Under the pieces are notes generated by a model. The model made no database searches. It had not been told where the DNA came from and saw only the letters and a program-made list of their open reading frames with translations. Shown in pieces: positions 6,542 through 38,921 of a stretch of DNA of 64,000 nt; within the stretch, counting starts at the first letter, position 1, and every line of letters starts with the position of its first letter. The translations under genes were made by a program, and so were the position numbers. The stretch covers positions 62,001 through 126,000 of the forward strand of contig JAAOMT010000563.1 of the NCBI GenBank assembly GCA_016748015.1, given 5' to 3'. The DNA comes from Geosiphon pyriformis uo1 (taxonomy: Eukaryota > Fungi > Glomeromycota).

Positions 6542-8964
6542 ATGAACACCATAACAAAAGAGTTGTCTTTACGAGATCAGCAAATTGGTAGGTCATGATT
6601 TGATATATCAAAGAGAATTGTTTTTGAAAAGATTTCTTGTATTCTTGAACTTTCATGTTGTTCATAATAAGAGGCAATAATCACTATGCTGAACCTCAAC
6701 ATAAAGCCTGACCCTACAATACCTACAACTTCTGAGGCTTTGGTTGATACTTCCCATGTCGATCTTGTATGGAAGGTGTTAATATTCGACGATTTTGGTC
6801 GAGATATCATATCTTCAGTGTTAAAAGTAAACGATCTCCGAGAAAATGGTGTGACTGTCCACATGTAAGTTTTGAAAATGAAATAGCGAAGAGGTCTAAC
6901 ATCCATTTACTTGCTCATTCTGCCCGTATATCTTTTTTTTTAATTCACAGGTCATTGAAAAGCGACCGACAGTCTATTGCTGATGTTCCTGCGGTATATT
7001 TTGTTGAACCCACTTCCGAGAACATTCAACGTATTAGTGAGGTAACACCACTCGTTCATAAGTTTATGTACACCAAGATCAATAAATATTGGTTACTAAC
7101 TGAAAAATGATTTATTTCAAAGGACGTATCTAGAAATCTATACGAGTCTTATTACATTAATTTTCAAAATTCGATTCCTCGAACTTTACTCGAGGAACTT
7201 GCTGCCGCCACGATACCAACAAACACATCTAATATGATCGCTCAGGTTTACGATCAATATTTAAACTTCATTGTTCTAGAATCAAATTTATTTTCCCTCA
7301 ATCAAAAAAACATTTACCATTCGTTAAATGATCCGATTGCTGCTGAGACTTCAATCGAGCGAGTAATTGATTGTACAGTGAATTCTCTTTTTTCAGTCTT
7401 AGTGACGATGGGTGTTATTCCGATCATAAGATGTCCTCGTGGAAATGCAGCCGAGATAATTGCTCAAAAGTTGGACGGTCGTTTGCGGGATCATATTCTG
7501 AACTCGCGGAATAATTTATTCGCAGAAACTACTGCGACATTGAGCTTTCAGAGGCCTGTTTTGATAATTCTTGACAGAAATATAGATTTGGTTCCGATGT
7601 TGAGTCATTCCTGGACTTATCAAGCTTTGGTACATGATGTATTAGATCTGCATTTAAACAGGATTACCCTGGAAAAGGAGGAGATGGGACGAACAACGAA
7701 AAAGAGTTATGATTTAGATAGTAAAGACTTTTTTTGGGCGAAAAATGCGGCAAGTCCTTTCCCCCAAGTAGCAGAGGACATTGATGTAGAATTAAATCGA
7801 TACAAGTCGGATGCTGCAGAGATTACTAAGCTTACCGGTGTAAACTCTTTGGATGATTTTGATCAATCCGACTTTTCTCATAATACTCAACATTTGAAAT
7901 CTGCAATCACTGCCCTTCCCGAGCTTACAGCACGTAAACAAACTTTGGATATGCACATGAACATTGCAACTTATTTATTGCAAGGTATTGGGGATAGAAA
8001 GCTTGATAATTTCTTCCAACTCGAGGAATCAATTACGCGTCAGAACAAATCAACAATACTCGATGCTCTTAAAGACCCCGAGAAAAAATCTTCACAGGAT
8101 AAGCTTCGTCTCTTTATAATATTTTATCTTTCTGTTGATGAAGTCACGCGGGAGGATATGTCTGATTATGAAGCTGCCTTACGTGAGGCTGGTTGTAATT
8201 TAGCTGCGCTGGAGTATGTCAAAAAGTAGGTAATATTTCTAAACCTCTAAAATTGAATCTTTAGTTATGCCTATATTAGAAATCAAGATTTTTTTATCAG
8301 AGTCCGAGAAATTACTCGGATGAATATCATGTCGAATCCAGTGCCTCAGAGTTCAGGGTTCGGTTTTCAGGGCTTTAGCTCTATCGGAAATAAAGTGGGT
8401 CCTCATTTTATTTCAACCTAATTCCATTTAGATTAATTTTAAAGCAAATCATATATTAATCCACTAAATAAATGATAATTTTTCAGCTCACCGATCGACT
8501 CAAAGAAGGTGGATTAGGTGGTGGCTTTGAGAATTTAATTTCTGGGGTCAAGAATTTACTTCCAACACGCAAAAATTTAACCTTGACAAGAATTGTCGAA
8601 TCAATCATGGAACCAACCACCGCGACTGCACCTGAGACTGATGATTATCTTTGGTTCGACCCAAAATTGTCTCGAAATTCTAGCACTAAACAACCTCGGC
8701 ATAAACATGCTTTTCAAGAAGGCATTGTTTTTATGGTTGGTGGTGGAAATTATATAGAATATCAGAATTTGCAAGAATTCTCTCAGGTAAGGGGCAAGGC
8801 TTTTGACTCGTCAAAGTTCATATTCACTCTATACAAATTAATTTGCCATTATGAATTATTGGAAAATACAACAGCGCCAAGCTGTCAAAAAGAAAATTAT
8901 TTATGGGTCGACCGATATATTGAATCCGAACTCATTCCTCAAAGAGCTCGAGATGCTGGGTTGA
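6542..8964 (+). CDS. SLY1: Sec1/Munc18-family vesicle trafficking protein Sly1 (6 introns)
   Basis: Motifs SLRDQQI, WKVLIFD...[81 protein letters not shown] and YGSTDILNP. Canonical GT-AG introns; stop TGA 8962-8964. Confidence 0.95.
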
Positions 8965-9975
8965 AACAATTAACGATCTAAATCGAAGATATAGATCCGT
9001 AAAAATTTGAGCCTATTGTCACCCTATAAATACAAACCCAGGCGCCATTGGTTGGGAGTGAAGAAGCAATCTTAACTTTTTGATTACCTTTTATTTTTAT
9101 TTCTCTTAATGGATAATTGCTGTGACTGATTTTACGTACAATTTGGACTTAATTTAAATAGTTTGAGTAAATATCAGACCGAAATTTTGCTATTCCTATT
9201 TGAGCTTCATATTAATGTCTATCAATAAAAATACTTCGCAATGCTTATTATTTGCCTGTCTTGCCTAAAAAGAATGAATATCTTTTTCCCATGGTAGTTT
9301 TACATAAACGTATATTGTAAAGTAAATCTTTTTGCAACATATTATAATTAAAAATTGATTTGTATATAAAAAAACTATTTTTGAAAATAATAAACACATT
9401 TTTTAAATTAAAAATTAAAAAACTTTTGTTTTTAGTGCCAGCCTTCTTGTGTTGTAATTTATTTTGTGAATGCAAGTTTATTTTAATTTCAAGTAAATTT
9501 AGGCTTTGGAGAATTTTTAAGTCAAAGAAAAATATTACATTACACATGTTTCGATAGATTGTTTAAACACCAACATTCATTAGAGCTGTGAATTCAAAAC
9601 AAATGATAAGATTGTATTCTACTCATCTCATTTTCCTGTGATCAAAGAATATTTCCCCAGATTATTTGATTTTGATCCTTACTGTTTTCCCGAAGTAATT
9701 ATACAGATCCAGTCAAAAATTTCTTATTGTATCAACAGAGAACCTTCAAAATTCGACAAAATTATAACTAAATTAATAAAAAATTTCAAATCGTCGATTC
9801 AACTATTATTTCTTGCAATTCCTCACTAGAGATTCCAAATATTTTAAAATTAATTCATATATTCATATATTGTGTGTTGGTTATAGATTAATGATTCAAA
9901 GGAACTAAAACTTTGTTGGATTGGTAGTTAATTCTTCTTTCCCTGTAATTTAGATGAGAATGAAATTTATTAAAA

Positions 9976-10440
9976 TTGTTCGAGCATCGGAATTTGAGGG
10001 ACCTCTCGAAAGAACCCTGGATGTCACTAGTTTCCACCGGTCTGCCATCAGAGATGGCAGGCAGAAAAGCCGGTGGCTTACCTGTACAAGCAGAACGTTT
10101 GCCGTCAGGGATGGGAGGCAAGGTCGTTCTGCTTGCACTTCTGCTCACCGGTCGTCAGAGATGGCAGACTGATGAGCAGGCGTTGCTTCGAGATCACCGT
10201 CAGAGATGGCAGGTGATTGTCTCTCGTCGCACTTGCAGCAGCGTCCGCCGTCAGAGATGGCAAGTAGGACGTGTGAAAACGAATAAACTCACCTTAGCCA
10301 TTCTCACAGTACCCTCAAGGGCGCCGACAAATGCGACGGTCAAAATAACAGCGTAAACACCAAGAAACGCTTTGTTCAGTTTTCCACCTCTAAGATAAAG
10401 GGGTTTATGGGAAGACTTGTTGACCAAGACGAAACCGAAT
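9976..10440 (+). ncRNA. Candidate structured non-coding RNA with five motif-capped hairpins (family unassigned)
   Basis: Five copies of RTCAGRGATGGSA start at 10047, 10104, 10154, 10199 and 10250, each at the apex of a different complementary stem. A closing helix pairs 9994-10002 with 10309-10318, and a second paired domain spans 10338-10425. It is a GC/CpG-rich island in an AT-rich intergenic region with no credible ORF. Confidence 0.6.
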
Positions 10441-10965
10441 AAATGGTTGTCATAATATAGTTTTCCGAGTTTTTATTAATTCAAAAGGGGTATGTTACAT
10501 CCAATTTTTTTTACCTGAAAATGTTTTTGTAATTCAATCACTCTATTTTCTGGGGGTTTACCGAATAATCCCATTTTGTGTCAAGAAGAGGGAAGGATTT
10601 GTATAAAATAAACCTGGGAATATACAAGTAAAACGTTTTATGATAAAACTTTTTAAGTGAGTTCGAGGACCTTTAAAAATCTAGTCATTTCCGATTTAAC
10701 TAGTGTCTGCACCCTCATAATTCTGGCCGCCACTAAGAAATGGTGAACCTGGGGTGAATTTATTTTTAGGAACACTAAACTTGGATATTTGACCTTTAGT
10801 TTGATGGATTTTAACGCCGACCATTTTACAAAAATTCTGTACCGGAGGTTTTTGCTTAGTATCGAATTTTGAAATTTCAAATTAGTTCAAAATGTCTGGT
10901 TGAATATTGATATTTTAGTTTTAACACATCTCACACTAATCAAAAGGAAAACGCTTGATGTGATG

Positions 10966-13900
10966 CTATTCCGTTAAGTTTCTGGTTTGCGATGATGGCT
11001 GCTGTTTTAGTTGCTGTCAATGGGTGAAGAGAATAAAGAAAAAGAATGAACTTGATGAAAAATTAATAAATCAAGATTAGGGTAGAAATTTAATTGGCAC
11101 AGTATTCTACGACACTTATATCGTGATTGGTTTAACAGTATTGATTTTTTATATCGAGTTGAGCGTATTTTGGAAATATTGTAAAGTTCTCGAAGAATAG
11201 TGCGTTAAAGTTCTTACCCCAAGACAAAGATTAGGTGACAACTTACCTGTTGCCTCCAGGCATGCGCAGTTGCCAAAAATTTGAGATTGGGTAGCTGAGT
11301 TTGATCATCAGGGAATATATAATCAAAGTATTCTTCCCAAGCTACACCAGCTTGCCCTTCAGTTTCGTCTAGTTTTCTTCGTTTCTTCACCACCTGCGGC
11401 ATTTTACCTACAACAACAGACAAAGTTTCTGGCGAGCCTTGATTTTTTTCGAAGTCCTTCCATGATTCGAGGAGAAGAACACGCTAGCAATTTAAATGTT
11501 TTTTTTTATAGATATATACAAGATTCAATTGATGATATCTTCTTGTATTTAAAAGTAAATAAGAGACATACCTCCTCCTTTAATTCTTTTTCTTTCAAAC
11601 TTTTATATGCATCTTCAAAAACTTTTCTTGCTCTTATTATGGATGCCTTTCGATCATCGTCAGCATTCAATTCGAATTGGGCAAAACTAATCCATACTTT
11701 AACATGACCAGTTTTTCTTAGAAGGCGTTCATACAAACTCCGGGTTTTATCAAATTCCTCCTCTGTGAATTCAAAGTCAATGTATGCTTTCCAAAGGAAC
11801 TCGGGCATATCAAGCACCGGTTGATCAACGGCCAGCTCAAAGATTGCTCGACACCTGTCATAGTCGCCCAGCATGCGCTCTAACTCTGCAAACTTGATCC
11901 ATGCATAACAGTTAGCAGGATTATGCTCCAAATATTTTGTATATAAAGTTCGACAACGATCGAATTCGCGAAGCTACAAAAGAACTGTGTTAATTCATTT
12001 TCTGTGAAAGATTTCTTCATTATATTTACTACATACTTGCAACTCTAATTCAATATATCCTTTAAAGAGCCTATCCTTTGGGCACATACCTCAAATACAA
12101 AGCTCAGTAAATGTTATTGAGGATGATTAAAGACTCACAATAATCTAACGCATTTACAACTTGCCCTTACCTATAGCTTTTCCCAAAGTTAAACGTGCTG
12201 TCTGTAAATCTAGTCTTCGTATCTCAAATTGGGCATATAGTAGCCAAATCTTTGCAAAGGTAAATTTTTTGTGGGGTATCAGACCAAGGCATTCAGTATA
12301 GATTTGCTTCGTTCGATCCAAGTCCTTAGGAGGTTATTGATTTTTTAGATAATATCAGCTGCAAACAATCAACGTGACCAACCAACCAACCAACCTTGGT
12401 GACAAGTTCTTCGAATAAAGCGTAGTTGATCCACAAATATATATACCGCCGCCAAAACCGCTTCTCTTTGGTGGGAGGCACCTGTGCAATAGCACGCTCA
12501 TAAACCTCACGTACTTTTTCAATATCCTCGGCGTTCTCTTCCAGTCGAGCGTAATCAAACCATATATCATAATTTTTTGGGTTAGCTTTCAATTCCTATA
12601 ATAGATGGGTTTAAGAACTAGAAATATTGGAATAAACTAAATTTCACTTATAGTAACCTCTTCATATTGTAGACGACGTTTTCCTACTACGACATCTTCA
12701 ATTCCCTGTTTATCCCCATATTGTTTTTCAAAATGGGTATAAGCATTATATAAAGCTTCGGACTTTGAACGTGGTAGCTTTTCCAAAGCGTATTTGTAGA
12801 TAACACGCGATCTCTCGAACTAGCAAAATTTCATATAAAATAAATCATCGATAAGGGTCATGAAACTTAATATCATATGATCAACCAGAAATTTTTCCTA
12901 CCTCTTTTGATCTTGTCTCAAATTTTGCGAAGGCAATAAAAATTTTTTGTTCCATATGATCTTCCCCCAACATTTCTATAGCCTGACTAAAAATCTCTCT
13001 GCATTTTTCTAATATGAACAGACAACATGATTAACGATAGATAAAAGGAAAAGCCCATTTTACTTATCATTATCTTACAAAGAATATAGATCACCTAAAT
13101 TATTTTGTTCTTCTTCAAATTTGATCCACTTCAGCCAATTTTTCGACTGAGGATGAACATTCACAAATCGCTCATATATAGCTCTTGCTCTATCTATTTC
13201 ATTATACCGCCTTTCCATTTTTATATAAGCGTTCCACGCAGACTCATCGGGTTCCCATTGCATCCAGCGCTCAAATATTTGCCGTGCTCCTGCAACATTC
13301 CCAAGCATCTCTTCCATATAAGTATATTTAAACCTAATAGAAATTGATTGAATAAATAACTGAAATTTGTTACCATGCCAAAATTAAAGTCTTTTGTATT
13401 TTTATCAAATACCAGAATTGATCCACTCGAGGAAGTAATGTTACAGCGCGATCGAACAGATTTCTTGCGTGATTAATATTCCGATTCTTCATTTCCATTT
13501 CAGAATATTTAATATACACAGTGATATTGCGGGAATCAACATCCAAGGCTCGTTCATAGATTGAGCGCGCTCTTTGAAAGTAAAAGATATGAGGAAAGAA
13601 AATATCTATGCTGTCATTAAAGGCGATCAGGATAAAACTATTTTCACCTGTCCAATTCTTTCTGGCTTTCTTCCCAAGCCGCATATTTCAGCCAGCTTCC
13701 GACATTTAACCTATTTCTTCGAATAGAATCTTCAAACTCTTTTCGTTTTCGTAATCTATATTCAGAAAGTTCTTCTAGATCGGATATTTTTTGACGCGGA
13801 GCTTGCTTGGCAGTTTCTTGTCGCTCCTTTGCTTCGCGAAGAATTTGTTCGGCTGTGATTTGAATTGGAGCCGGATTTTTATTTTTAATCTGGCAGGATA

Positions 13901-33500: not shown

Positions 33501-36500
33501 ACTACTGATTTCCACAATAAGCCAGTATAGACAATTTCCATTAGCCATTGAAAAGTGGCTGGTGCATTGGTTAAACCGAATGGCATTACTTCAAATTCAA
33601 AATTCTCTTCTCTCATGGTGAATGCCGTTTTCTTTTTGTTGGCTGGATCTATGGCTACTTGCCAGTAACCACTATCTAAGTCTAACATTGAGAACCATTT
33701 GTTTCTGCCAAAAGCATCAAATAATTCCTGTATCTGTGGAGTTGGATAGCTGTCTCTACAAGTTACACCATTGAGTTTTCTGTAGTTCACACAAAATCAG
33801 ATCTTTCCATTCTTCTTATGGACGAGTACCACTGGTAATAACCATAGGCTTATTAATGGCTAAATTAGCCCATTGTCAAGCATTCAGTTTATTTCTTGAC
33901 GAATAATTTCGTGGCTGACTGGTGGCACTCTGTATGCTCTTTGTTTAATTGGCATTACATCTCCAGTCTTGATCTAATGCTGGATGATGTCAGTTTGGCC
34001 AAACTTATTTTCGCTGGCAAAGATGTCATTGAACTGGTTAAGCAACATCTTGAGTTGTATACATTAAAGTGGATCTAAGTTTCCCATGTTTATTTGTTTT
34101 AATTGTTTTGGTTGGAGCAAAAATACATTCACTTCGTTCATATATTGTTTATGATGTGATATTGACATATTCACAAAGTTGTGGAAAGTCTGGAATGGGG
34201 TTTGGTGGTTGATCCTTCATTTTAGTGTTTAAGTATCCAATAATAGTTCCGGCTGGTATTTCTATGACATTTTCTGTATTGTTGTAGATGGGAATTTTGA
34301 TGTGGCTGTAATTTTTGGCTGGTATGTGGAGATTGATGAGTCCAACTTCTCCTAATTCACAAAAACTGGCTTCTGCTTCAAAAATTTGTGCTTGGTCTTT
34401 TTCTTTCTTTTCTATTGCTAGCATGTACTGGTTATATGATGAAATAGAAATAGCTTGACCGGTTGAGATAATTTTTTCTTGGCCAACAATTTTTTCCTCC
34501 ACCATATTAACTGGTACATCTATTCTACTCATTGATCCGAATTCTTGTATTCCTCTTGCTGTTATTCTTAATTCCTCCTTCTTTCCCACTAATACTAACT
34601 TAGCTACTCTAACCAGAGGCAGGAATATTGCCTGTGCTATTTTTTCATTGGGCTCTATTATATAGGCTTTTTCTGAGTCATTTTGTAGCATAGCGATGAT
34701 ATTTTCTACATATTCCACGTCAATTATTCCTCCTCTTATATTAATCCCTTTTTTCACTAAACTACTCCTAGATGCTAATTAAACCATTATTGTTGCTGAA
34801 ATTTCTAGTGCTACTTTCAGATCAATGCAGGTGCGTGAATGTGGTTCCAATTTGATGGTCTCTTTTTCTGAATACCTCAGATCAAACTCTACATCAGTAT
34901 TATGCGCACATTCTGGCATAATACCTTCTTCATTGTCACTATATCATTTTAACTCTTGTTCCTTGGAGAGATCTGGTAGTGCAATGTATTGTTCATAGTT
35001 TAAATTGGAGTTTGAATCTGAGTCTGAATCATCTTTGTTGTCATTGTTATTTTGAACAGAGCTGGAACCAGTGTTTTTGTTGTCATCATCGGAGTCTGGA
35101 TCATGATTGATCAGTGATTCTGATTCCAATGCACAGCTGCTGATTGGTTCTTTTTCTTCAGGGATTGTATAGATTATGTGTGGTGGTGGATTGTAAATAA
35201 AGTCACAATTGTCACAATATTCAAAGTCACTAGGAATTAAATAATGGCAACACAGTCTTGTATTTAACTATGCTAACCATTGTTCTTGCTCTTCTCTAGT
35301 GGGTGCCAAGTTTTGGTAGTGTTCATGGAACTCTTCTGGTTCCAAAAAATTTATGACTGGCTCTGCATCCCAGTCAAGCTCAATGGGTTCTGGTGGGTTG
35401 TTTTTAATTGTTCTGATTTCTTTTGGTGATGTGTCTTCAATTTTGGTGATTGCCATCTGCCATAATTCATCATTGTCGTGTGGACAACTGTCCAATTGCT
35501 GTACAGCTCTTCTCCAGGTGGCTTCTATGGGTGTTTCTTTCTCAACCCAGTCGCTAATGAGGATCATGTATTAGCAGGACACATCGCACATTCCTCCTCT
35601 CCCCGGAATGTCATTCCACATTCCTTCATCGAGAAGAGTTTCTCCACAGGCTATACATGGTGTATTATTCTATTTTCCCACTCATTTTGGTTTTCCAAAA
35701 CATTTGACATGGCATGCGTGACAATAGAACTTGGTTGCCGTCTGATATTTTTCATCGTCACCACAGCATGTGCCCATTGATGACAATTTCTTGTCACAAT
35801 TAATGCATATCAGTTTGGGTCGGCGATAGGTTAATGATTGTTATTGACCATAGGTGTATGGGATATAAGTGTTGTTGGCTTGAGTGTTTTCTTTTTCCCT
35901 CTCTTTCTCTTTGTCCTTTTCTTTTTTCTACTCCCAACTCAATGGTTCTTCCTGTTTGTTGTCAGTCTAGGTCAAATCGTCTGTTTCCCAAGTCAGTTCT
36001 TCTTTTTGCTTTCTCTTAGGGTTGTCGTTCTATGAAAGTATCAATAGTAGTTTGTTGTGGTCGGTATCAGCCCAGAAGACTTGGTAAGCTTCCCAGGTAG
36101 GTTTTTTTTTCTCCTTCTCCAGTTCGATCAATAGTTTCTCTCTTGGAGGAGTCTTGAAATGGCCACATATGGCCGGTATACATATATGTCAGCCCTAATA
36201 TGTTAGCTGGAGTTTTTGGGTGTTCCAGTCTAATGTTACATTAACTTTGGATAGCCAGTCATTACCAATGAGAGCTTGGTATTGAGTGGCTTCCATCACT
36301 AGAACTTTAATAGGAGTTATGATGTCATTGACTTTGAAAGGGAAGTCGTTGATTTCGCCAATTGGAGTTTTGGTTGCTCCATCAGCTGTGATGATTCTGG
36401 TGCTGGCAGCTCAATCAACTTGGCAACCTAATTGATCCATGAGTTGTCGTGTGATGATGCTGCCTGCTAAACCACTGTCAAGGATCAATTTGATGGATTG

Positions 36501-38921
36501 TCCCTCGACTTTGATGTCAGTATACATCGCAGTGATTGGTTTGGCTTCAAGAGTGACTCCACTAAATAGTGGCATTGCAGTTGTTTCCTTGAATTTGAAT
36601 GAGAATATAGCAGCCAAAGACTCGTCTTTGGTGATGGTAGCAGGTAAGATATTACTGGTGAGTGGTTGTTTTTGGGCGAATGCCAGGTTATTGGTTGAGA
36701 CATCTTCTGGGGTAACCAGAAGACTTAAATAGTTCTGGGGTTGACTGGCACCCAAATTCCACTGGCGTAATCCAGATAGTTGCTGTGAAAAACTGGGGAT
36801 CAGTTGATAGACTACCATCACCGATCTCCAGCTCTGTTGAGTTATTCTCAGTCTTTGGGTTCTGTTGAGTAGTAAGCTTTGGGGTGGTGTTTGAATTTGT
36901 TTAGATTGATAGATTATTTGTGGCTGTGGTTGTTAATAAATTACTTGTGGTTGTGGTTGATAGATTGGAGCTTAATACACTGAAGATTGATAGACTGATG
37001 ACTGTATTACTGGTAGGTAAGTGGATTAGTTTTGATTTGGATATTGATTCAGAGTTTGAAACCAGCAATCAGGGTTTCGATATTGATTTTCTGATTATTG
37101 GTTATTTAAACACTGGTGACAGTCAATTTGGATATGTTTTTGTTTACCACAATAGTGGCAGATATGCATTTTCTGTTGCCACTGTTGATTGGTTGATGAA
37201 GATGGATGTGGTTGATTTTGGACACAATTAGAGTTTCCTTAATTATTGCATTGTTGTGGAGGCTGATAAATGGTGTGATTGTTAGCTAAGTATCTTTTCA
37301 ATCTCTTATTAATTGATTCACTGAACTTTTCCAATTTGGAATCCAATTCAGATGATCTGTTCATTACTAGATTAATGGCTTGGGCATGGTTAGTCTCTGA
37401 CTCAGCAGATTCAAAATCTCTGGCACGTGTGACTGTGTCTTGAAGGGTGCCTGGATGCAATGGATGTACATGTTGCAAGATACTGCTGTGCAGGCCACAA
37501 ATAAACTGGTTGAGGATCTGTGGGACTGTGAAATAGTTGGTGTCAATTGCTTGAATTTGGTGCAGATTTTGATGGAAGCGTCCCAGGTAAGTAGTGACCA
37601 CTTCAGTTTCTCCTTGTTTCATGGTGGTGAATGTATTGACTAGGCGATTGATGCTGTTATTGTTGCTGAAGTATCTTAGGAATTCCACTTTGAAGGCATT
37701 GAAATCTTGTGGTTTATTAACCAAGCTCTGATACCATGAATTGGTGGTATCCTTGAGAAAGTAGAGAATGGTTTGCATTGCTCGGGTGTCATTCCATCCA
37801 TTGGCTGCAATGGCTTTTTCTATATCATTCAGCTATACTTGAGTGTCATTCTCTTCGCCAGTAAAGTTGTCAAGTTTTGCAATTGGTGTATAGGCCATTG
37901 AATCTAAGTTAGATGGTTGTGGTGGCTGTTGAAGCAGTTGTTGTTGTACTGGTTGTTGGGGTGGTAGTTAAAGTGACTGTTGTATAGGTTTGGCTATGAG
38001 ATTAATCGGCAGTTGATCAATAACAATTACTGGAGATAAGTTTTGCTGATTAATTAATTTGGAATTTGGATTGTTTTGCCTTTGATGATTCAGAGTTTTG
38101 ATTTCCGAATTTTCTAGATTTAGATTTTGCTGAGTTTGAAAATTTGGGGTTTCAACTTCTAGGTTTTCAGTAATTGGATGCTGGGAAGTGAATTCTTGAT
38201 CCTCTGATTCTTTTTCCTCTTTTTCTGAGTCTGCTGCTTCCCATGGATCAGAGATTCTGAAATCTGGTGGAGACAATGGTGATCAAAGTCTTGATGGAGT
38301 TGATAATTGTAAATTAAATTCCTTAAAGTATTTGCCGTATGGTCCTAATAATTCTGTTTTCCATTGTCTACTTTGGAATGGGAATCGTCCAAATGCTAAT
38401 GTTGCAGTTGATGGGAATACATCTGTTGATAATATGTTGATGGCGCTTCCAGGTGTATAGTGGTAGGATGGGTTGCTTGGGGATTTAATTCTATTTTTCT
38501 TCCAAGTAGGTGGCTGTATTTTTCTGGGTGTTACTGTTAGTGTTTATAGTTTTTCCTTGCCTTTACTAGTGTATGTAATTAGATATTTTTGTTGAGTATG
38601 GTGTTCAATTTCTTTGTTGATCTTAGTAATGATGGATGTAAAATTATGATTTGTTGGCAAGTTGGTGTTTTGAATTAACTCCCTATAGAAAGTTTCTCTT
38701 GCTGATTCAGTATTCACTGGTGTTCCTAATAAAAAGGAAATTTTTTCGTTGATGTAAAAATTGAAGGCTGATTCGGCAGATATATAATTGTGATTTAATC
38801 CCAAATATTGACAATAGTATTGAAATAAGAATTTTGTGAATCCTAAATGGTTTGCTCCTATATTTTCTGATTCTGCCACTTTTGGATGGTGTTTGTTGGT
38901 GCTGGTTCTCTGTAGAATTAT

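Follow-up and report, generated by a model that had tools for sequence, protein, structure and literature searches.

The window, as we term the whole stretch of 64,000 nucleotides that was analysed, derives from the glomeromycotan fungus Geosiphon pyriformis and carries a SLY1 gene and a CLF1-like gene with HAT repeats (together 7234-11931). A 331-codon Sec1-family exon of SLY1 at 7234-8229 has 100% identity with the Geosiphon SLY1 protein P0190 and 71-83% with other Glomeromycota. The stop codons of the two genes, at 8964 (SLY1) and ~11214 (CLF1-like), flank an array of five hairpins. Between these neighbours, on the minus strand at 9928-10574, lies a three-exon COX7a gene of 64 codons, which is easily overlooked as its exons measure 60, 123 and 15 nt. 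The parts of the gene are as follows.

10515-10574, minus strand: exon 1, 20 codons, MGLFGKPPENRVIELQKHFQ, with GT directly after
10416-10514, minus strand: intron 1, 99 nt, 30% GC, GT...AG, at the same position as in Ambispora
10293-10415, minus strand: exon 2, 41 codons, ending ...GTVRMAK
9943-10292, minus strand: intron 2, 350 nt, GTGAGT...ACAG, 51% GC (core 55%), containing the whole hairpin array
9928-9942, minus strand: exon 3, GKKN and stop

The match of exon 2 to PF02238 reaches 25.9 bits, over a cut-off of 22.1, and the exon is 46% identical to the Ambispora leptoticha COX7a protein P0269 up to the same exon end. It is also the only above-cut-off COX7a match in the 128-Mb assembly, and the gene is thus single-copy. 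Exon 1 has a weak match to the N-terminal part of PF02238, and 9 of 11 of its residues equal residues 10-20 of P0269. Intron 2 has GT...AG borders, joins exons in frame and occupies a position common to the orthologues, as expected of a spliceosomal intron. The preliminary description had proposed a stand-alone RNA in the intergenic spacer between SLY1 and CLF1; the spacer location is wrong and the stand-alone reading is not supported, as the array lies wholly within intron 2 of the minus-strand COX7a gene. The same applies to the helix 9994-10000/10312-10318 that was thought to close all five arms into one multibranch domain, because its 3' arm, CCCTCAA, is coding sequence of exon 2 (codons A-L-E-G). 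The reading as an orphan intergenic ncRNA stemmed from the overlooked 64-codon gene, and a GC-rich structured island should be declared a stand-alone RNA gene only after a search for small intron-rich genes such as COX7a.

The array is built around a 13-nt motif. The pattern RTCAGRGATGGSA matches five times in the 64-kb window, always on the plus strand, at 10047, 10104, 10154, 10199 and 10250 (the last copy ending at 10262), with spacings of 57, 50, 45 and 51 nt. The chance expectation is ~0.4 matches, and none of 100 shuffles of the window contained five. Each of the five units gave a hairpin when folded separately; they are listed here without assignment to a strand.

10034-10076: H1, motif 10047-10059 ATCAGAGATGGCA; outer stem CCACCGG/CCGGTGG, inner perfect 8-bp palindrome
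10087-10135: H2, motif 10104-10116 GTCAGGGATGGGA; outer stem of 11 bp
10140-10180: H3, motif 10154-10166
10189-10226: H4, motif 10199-10211; its plus-strand unit 10196-10216 aligns with the sense-strand junction of exon 2 and the 5' splice site
10238-10274: H5, motif 10250-10262

A repeat search extended the shared block to as much as 18 nt and recovered the arm pairs of H1-H3. The island at 9976-10340 exceeds its shuffled versions in folding stability on either strand (z -4.41 and -4.23) and forms the most structured and most G+C-rich (0.55-0.60) 150-nt stretch of the 64-kb window. Pattern count, shuffles and separate folds therefore agree on what had been described from the letters alone, i.e. 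five copies of the motif on hairpins with differing but complementary flanks. Between H2 and H1, at 10076-10084 on the minus strand, the sense strand reads ...UGUACAG/GUAAGC, a 3'-splice-site-like YAG followed by a consensus 5' splice site; this is the layout of a recursive splice site and may be due to chance. The second most structured stretch of the window after GC correction lies at ~36150-36850 (plus strand) and 37050-37250, with residual z values of -2.5 to -3.7 at 41-45% G+C.

The array is unique in the genome. The 365-nt island matched only itself in 128 Mb, and neither a 15-mer pattern nor a two-motif pattern had matches elsewhere in the 128-Mb genome. A covariance model of the 23-nt unit (R1) was searched against the genome with 150 of ~6,900 first-look candidates scored; among these, the five copies reached 32-36 bits and the next match 19.5 bits. 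A search of the whole window against Rfam 15 at gathering thresholds returned no matches, as had been expected for an RNA of no known family, and the permissive mode yielded nothing in the island and chance-level matches (E 1-8) outside it. A two-motif scan of metagenome contigs found more than 120 loci, all tandem repeats or isolated chance matches, none of which exceeded 23 bits with R1. Seven loci in bacterial or archaeal genomes and eight in viral contigs were likewise unrelated to the array, again with no score above 23 bits under R1, and a literature search for the motif retrieved unrelated PCR primers only.

Several known kinds of element were compared with the array and rejected. A transposon, MITE or introner-like element does not suit a single copy in 128 Mb whose inverted repeats are internal to the units and not terminal; the occurrence at one locus also disposes of high-copy dispersed transposon repeats, which had been named as the outcome that would undo the first account. 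A tandem (mini)satellite was dismissed as Tandem Repeats Finder detected no tandem array and flank identity is 0.18-0.28. An iron-responsive element is defined by the six-nt loop CAGUGN, an upper stem of 5 bp and a 5'-side C bulge. Here, the loop CAGRG is closed directly by U-A, with neither a sixth loop base nor a 5' C bulge; the sole bulge is a 3' A, and Rfam gave no IRE match. The Smaug/Vts1 loop CNGGN fits H2 (CAGGG) only, the other four copies reading CAGAG, and the earlier remark that the loop fully fits neither of these two consensus sequences was correct.

Box C/D snoRNAs carry C (RUGAUGA) and D (CUGA) boxes by a terminal stem, and H/ACA snoRNAs consist of hairpin, hinge and hairpin with pseudouridylation pockets and with H and ACA boxes. 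Inspection of both strands of the array showed CUGA several times on the sense strand, but without C boxes, and Rfam gave no snoRNA match; the units are only 38-49 nt long and, by inspection, have no pockets. These arguments hold less strictly for novel guides. The array is not a tRNA. A hammerhead was discarded by eye, with CUGAUGA found in H3 only, as were a K-turn, an AGNN/Rnt1 loop and an Ire1 CNGNNGN loop, none of which holds across the copies. A coding repeat or Kex2-type peptide precursor is incompatible with the 50-nt spacing, which shifts the frame between copies 2 and 3, and the ORFs across the island matched no Pfam family. A NUMT or mitochondrial hairpin repeats were set aside because the motif is absent elsewhere in the assembly. 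As for a mimic or sponge of U6, the Geosiphon U6 sequence ACAGAGAAGAUUAGC has only 6 nt in common with the motif. The U6 snRNA gene itself (L153:1501-1620, 93 bits) has a TATA-like box ~30 nt upstream and a T-run terminator, and its ACAGAGA box is followed by AGAUUAGC, as in most eukaryotes.

Other housekeeping genes of the same genome also have oversized introns of ~380-450 nt, namely eIF3L (L162:1057-1501), CLU1 (L165:1917-2296) and BCAT (L167:~2350-2700), which are moderately structured with mixed helices. A genome-wide class of the same element was rejected on these introns, which have 39-41% GC and no repeated loop motif. As far as these three introns can tell, the COX7a array does not appear to be simply a member of a common class of structured introns.

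The copies of the 13-nt motif are 91% identical to each other in the ungapped register. Identity falls to 46-56% over the five bases on each side and to 18-28%, the random level, in the flanks beyond 5 nt from the motif. Outside a 17-nt block, the spacers have no more direct 6-8-mers in common than shuffled sequences do, and a strong excess of inverted 6-8-mers (P ≤ 0.002). The helix of 5 bp that closes the motif reads CTGCC/GGCAG, TTGCC/GGCAA, CGGTC/GACTG and TCACC/GGTGA in H1-H4 and is poorer in H5. Four of its five variable pairs are changed on both sides, and the covariation score was equalled by none of 500 shuffles; covariation, which had been proposed as a test, is thus supported for this closing helix. 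Among the 87 stem pairs, 76 are Watson-Crick, nine are G-U on the plus strand and two are A-C on the plus strand (equivalent to G-U on the minus strand), with no other mismatches. All 11 non-Watson-Crick pairs are hence of the wobble type, and transversion mismatches number zero. The five units look like old tandem copies of one stem-loop. If they do share an ancestor, the stems were rebuilt by compensatory change while the core stayed fixed, which would argue for selection on the folded single strand of the array.

The two strands differ in how the conserved block is presented. On the plus strand, the apex can fold in two registers. One, CCRUC-AGR-GAUGG, is paired in all five copies, with a G-U pair in four and A-U in H1; the preliminary description had noted an A-U/G-U exchange between copies. 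The other, GUCA-GNGA-UGGC followed by a bulged A, is stacked on the closing helix with 91% of cells paired; it consists of a 4-bp stem with a GNRA tetraloop (GAGA or GGGA), and the sole variable base of the core is the N of GNRA. On the minus strand, a C-A mismatch leaves the block as a mostly open 13-nt loop closed by the 5-bp helix. Hairpin energies favour the plus strand in four of five units (sums of -105.6 kcal/mol for plus vs -89.7 kcal/mol for minus), and so does folding of the exact intron 2 (-136.6 kcal/mol, z -5.55, vs -119.4 kcal/mol, z -4.20). The wobbles had been taken to suggest selection at the RNA level and to give the strand. The count of nine G-U pairs on plus vs two on minus and the energies do lean that way; however, the number of independent wobbles is ~5 vs 2, which is not significant, because four of the nine share one motif position. 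The sense strand is certainly transcribed, as it is part of a single-copy housekeeping gene, and the minus strand is the sole strand known as transcribed, in the form of COX7a pre-mRNA. It is also the minus strand that bears the complementarity to the splice junction and the 5' splice-site hairpin described below.

In Ambispora gerdemannii (L126:3976-4324) and A. leptoticha (P0269; L147:2121-2454), the annotated COX7a genes are divided into the same three exons. Their introns follow residues 20 and 59, where the Geosiphon exon ends coincide, and both genes finish with GKK and stop after the same intron, vs GKKN and stop in Geosiphon. Intron 2 is 75-77 nt long with 16-17% GC in both Ambispora species, and neither the hairpin array nor the motif occurs in intron 2 of these two orthologues. 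The Geosiphon intron is ~4.5-fold longer, at 51-55% GC compared to 16-30% in the other COX7a introns measured. Since the Ambispora intron at the same position is short and devoid of hairpins, the array is, judged from these sequences, a lineage-specific addition of ~270 nt to an old intron, acquired after the split from Ambispora. No COX7a gene or motif was found near the SLY1 loci of Diversispora, Gigaspora, Rhizophagus clarus and Paraglomus. A homologous-protein search with the Geosiphon exon 2 gave no matches, and one with the Ambispora exon 2 matched A. leptoticha alone. SLY1, COX7a and CLF1 are neighbours in Archaeosporales, with varying order and orientation: in A. leptoticha (L147:2121-5454) COX7a is convergent with CLF1, in A. 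gerdemannii it lies upstream of SLY1, and in Geosiphon it converges with SLY1, which implies local inversions.

The conserved block of the units is complementary to the junction of exon 2 with the 5' splice site of the same intron, and two features of the pre-mRNA are needed for what follows.

10289-10310, minus strand: end of exon 2 and first 4 nt of intron 2, the target complementary to the conserved loop block of the units in alignment and duplex tests
10272-10308, minus strand: predicted local hairpin, end of exon 2 paired with intron nt +6 to +21, pair probabilities ~0.9-1.0

The plus-strand unit of H4, ACCGTCAGAGATGGC--AGGTGA (10196-10216), aligns with the sense-strand junction ACTGTGAGA-ATGGCTAAG/GTGA (10310 to 10289; the slash marks the exon border) with 19 of 21 nt matched, two mismatches and three gap positions, and H3 and H5 also align with it over the motif. 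On the pre-mRNA, the invariant block CCUGCCAUCUCUGACGG accordingly has its complement in the final ~17 nt of exon 2, and in H4 the complementarity includes the 5' splice site. Pairing is not perfect (5+3+5 bp, one bulge and one mismatch), and H2 has two weakening changes. The best alignment score was equalled by 1.3-1.6% of shuffled or GC-matched controls (P 0.013-0.016) and the duplex energies of -18 to -27.7 kcal/mol were reached by 0.7-1.1% of controls (P 0.007-0.011), values to be read as P ~0.01-0.05 after correction, the complementarity having been noticed post hoc after several other candidate partners had been considered. With the 17-nt conserved block alone, the junction ranked 25th-26th in duplex stability among 12,767 windows of the 64-kb sequence. 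We grade the complementarity of the loop block to the junction as moderately significant on these sequence comparisons.

The exon partner GTGAGAATGGC is identical in Geosiphon and both Ambispora species because it codes for the conserved VRMA. A motif matched to a local exon that is fixed by its coding (TVRMA) would explain both the invariance across copies and the absence at other loci. In addition, the 5' splice site lies at the centre of an imperfect palindrome made up of the exon 2 end and the first 21 nt of intron 2. The predicted hairpin at 10272-10308 holds the 5' splice site GUGAG in a five-base loop, with four G-U pairs that are valid on the sense strand only, and in these models it resembles an adjacent sixth inverted copy. 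When the pre-mRNA is modelled thermodynamically, the exon 2 end favours this local partner and the units favour their own hairpins. The predicted minimum free energy structure of the sense strand would enclose the array in a multibranch that brings intron nt ~7-25 to the region after H1.

We propose, at a probability of roughly 0.4, that the array is a cis-acting structured expansion of COX7a intron 2 derived from an inverted copy of the exon 2/5' splice-site junction. Such a copy would have formed the core of an ancestral stem-loop, which would then have been amplified to five units within the intron; we infer this origin, as we do any effect on splicing. The array would be transcribed as part of the COX7a pre-mRNA, where its stems may compact an intron that, at 350 nt, is oversized for a genome with short introns, and the junction-complementary loops may compete with or aid the presentation of the 5' splice site and so set the splicing efficiency of COX7a. 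Several observations run counter to this cis-acting model. The duplex with the junction is imperfect and weaker in H2, and in the pre-mRNA models the exon 2 end and the units pair elsewhere. The plus strand folds better and has the neat GNRA apex, with the C-A mismatch falling on the sense strand, and one masking element would suffice, which leaves five copies unexplained. More tentatively, and possible rather than probable, the intron could be self-targeting, with five selected stem-loops antisense to its own junction forming a multivalent RNA switch that controls COX7a splicing or, after excision of the intron, the COX7a mRNA; alternatively, it could form a natural MS2-like array for an RNA-binding protein.

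The array may instead be a neutral, functionless relic: replication or repair errors (snap-back, template switching) would have multiplied an inverted duplicate of the junction inside the intron, where it was tolerated through its self-folding. Read in inverted orientation, the unit does resemble the junction; one more inverted copy directly adjoins the 5' splice site, and Ambispora has no array. The motif has also decayed per site (3 changes in 65 nt) to nearly the extent that the stem mismatches (11 of 87 pairs) imply. We nevertheless hold such a relic to be unlikely, as flanks at random-level identity without a direct k-mer excess, combined with a fixed 13-nt core and compensatory stems, would need selection if the units share an ancestor, and every one of the non-Watson-Crick pairs is of the wobble type with no transversion mismatch. 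In another reading, the intron or a stable excised form would present five loops to an RNA-binding protein, either as an intronic switch for COX7a splicing or stability or as an intron-derived sponge or scaffold. An invariant block of 13-17 nt on differing, covarying stems is the classic signature of a protein-recognised stem-loop; the mostly open sense-strand loop on its 5-bp helix would suit single-strand-binding domains, and introns of highly expressed housekeeping genes commonly host stable RNAs. However, the covariance search of the 128-Mb genome, in which 150 of the ~6,900 first-look candidates were scored, gave no second site and thus a single target locus, with Rfam empty and no fit to a known loop consensus (IRE, SRE, AGNN, K-turn, by eye). 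Since the motif is complementary to the junction of its own intron, a cis role is more economical than a trans-acting protein with only one locus to bind in 128 Mb, and we regard the protein-binding array as quite unlikely.

The opposite strand offers a further candidate, namely an independent plus-strand ncRNA, antisense to COX7a intron 2, with five GNRA-capped hairpins serving as a scaffold or sponge. It would account for the better energies in four of five hairpins and over the exact intron, for the excess of G-U pairs and for an apex with a bulged A in which only the N of GNRA varies in the core. Against these points, the independent wobbles do not differ significantly between strands, the proposed closing helix lies in a coding exon, promoter or terminator evidence is absent, antisense genes nested in short fungal introns are rare, and the plus strand could simply have inherited its G-richness from a purine-rich exon end copied in inverted orientation. 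Such a gene is therefore improbable in our estimate. Highly improbable is an element acting as DNA, whether as an intronic enhancer with five sites for a DNA-binding protein or as palindromes that form cruciforms. The core does have a partial palindrome, CCATC-AGA-GATGG in H1, and the copies are ~50 bp apart, but differing, covarying flanks and G-T wobbles are unexpected for double-stranded sites, and the 57/50/45/51 spacing is out of helical phase.

The cis-acting expansion has several relatives in kind. In the Neurospora NMT1 TPP riboswitch and the autoregulatory hairpins of RPL30 and RPL22, intronic structure decides the availability of splice sites. The COX7a intron would be similar in having predicted structure beside, or complementary to, its 5' splice site. 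Unlike those systems, it has no ligand-binding fold, known protein site or Rfam match, and its complementary element is present five times, each within its own hairpin. Introner-like elements and MITE-derived introners of fungi and algae are multi-copy families that create new introns; the COX7a intron resembles them in being longer than normal with an unusually stable predicted structure, whereas its array is single-copy and sits in an old intron position common with Ambispora. In engineered MS2 and PP7 arrays, identical loops are combined with non-repetitive stems and linkers and with a bulged A under a short capped stem. The plus strand of the COX7a array shares the identical loops, the differing stems and the bulged A below a capped stem, but the array is natural and unrelated in sequence to the phage operators, and we know of no coat-protein-like binder in fungi. 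Display of one apical sequence on several differing stems is also found in the GGA loops of CsrB/RsmZ and in IRE and SRE arrays, yet the COX7a loop fits no such consensus and the array is intronic, eukaryotic and confined to a single locus. Pre-mRNA structures that bind their own protein products exist (PMC12350175). Budding yeast has zipper stems and other structured introns, RPS17B among them, which are lineage-specific and show little sequence conservation (PMC12350175). The COX7a array differs from them in comprising five tandem local hairpins with one invariant loop block and apparently no single long-range stem, in an intron expanded ~4.5-fold over its orthologues with GC far above other COX7a introns.

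If functional, the array would represent a natural case of an intron that has grown by reverse-copying its own splice junction, with the five copies under selection. It would also provide a compact and testable model for the control of splicing by intron RNA structure in an essential gene of the respiratory chain, and would place such control in an early-diverging, unculturable symbiotic fungus.
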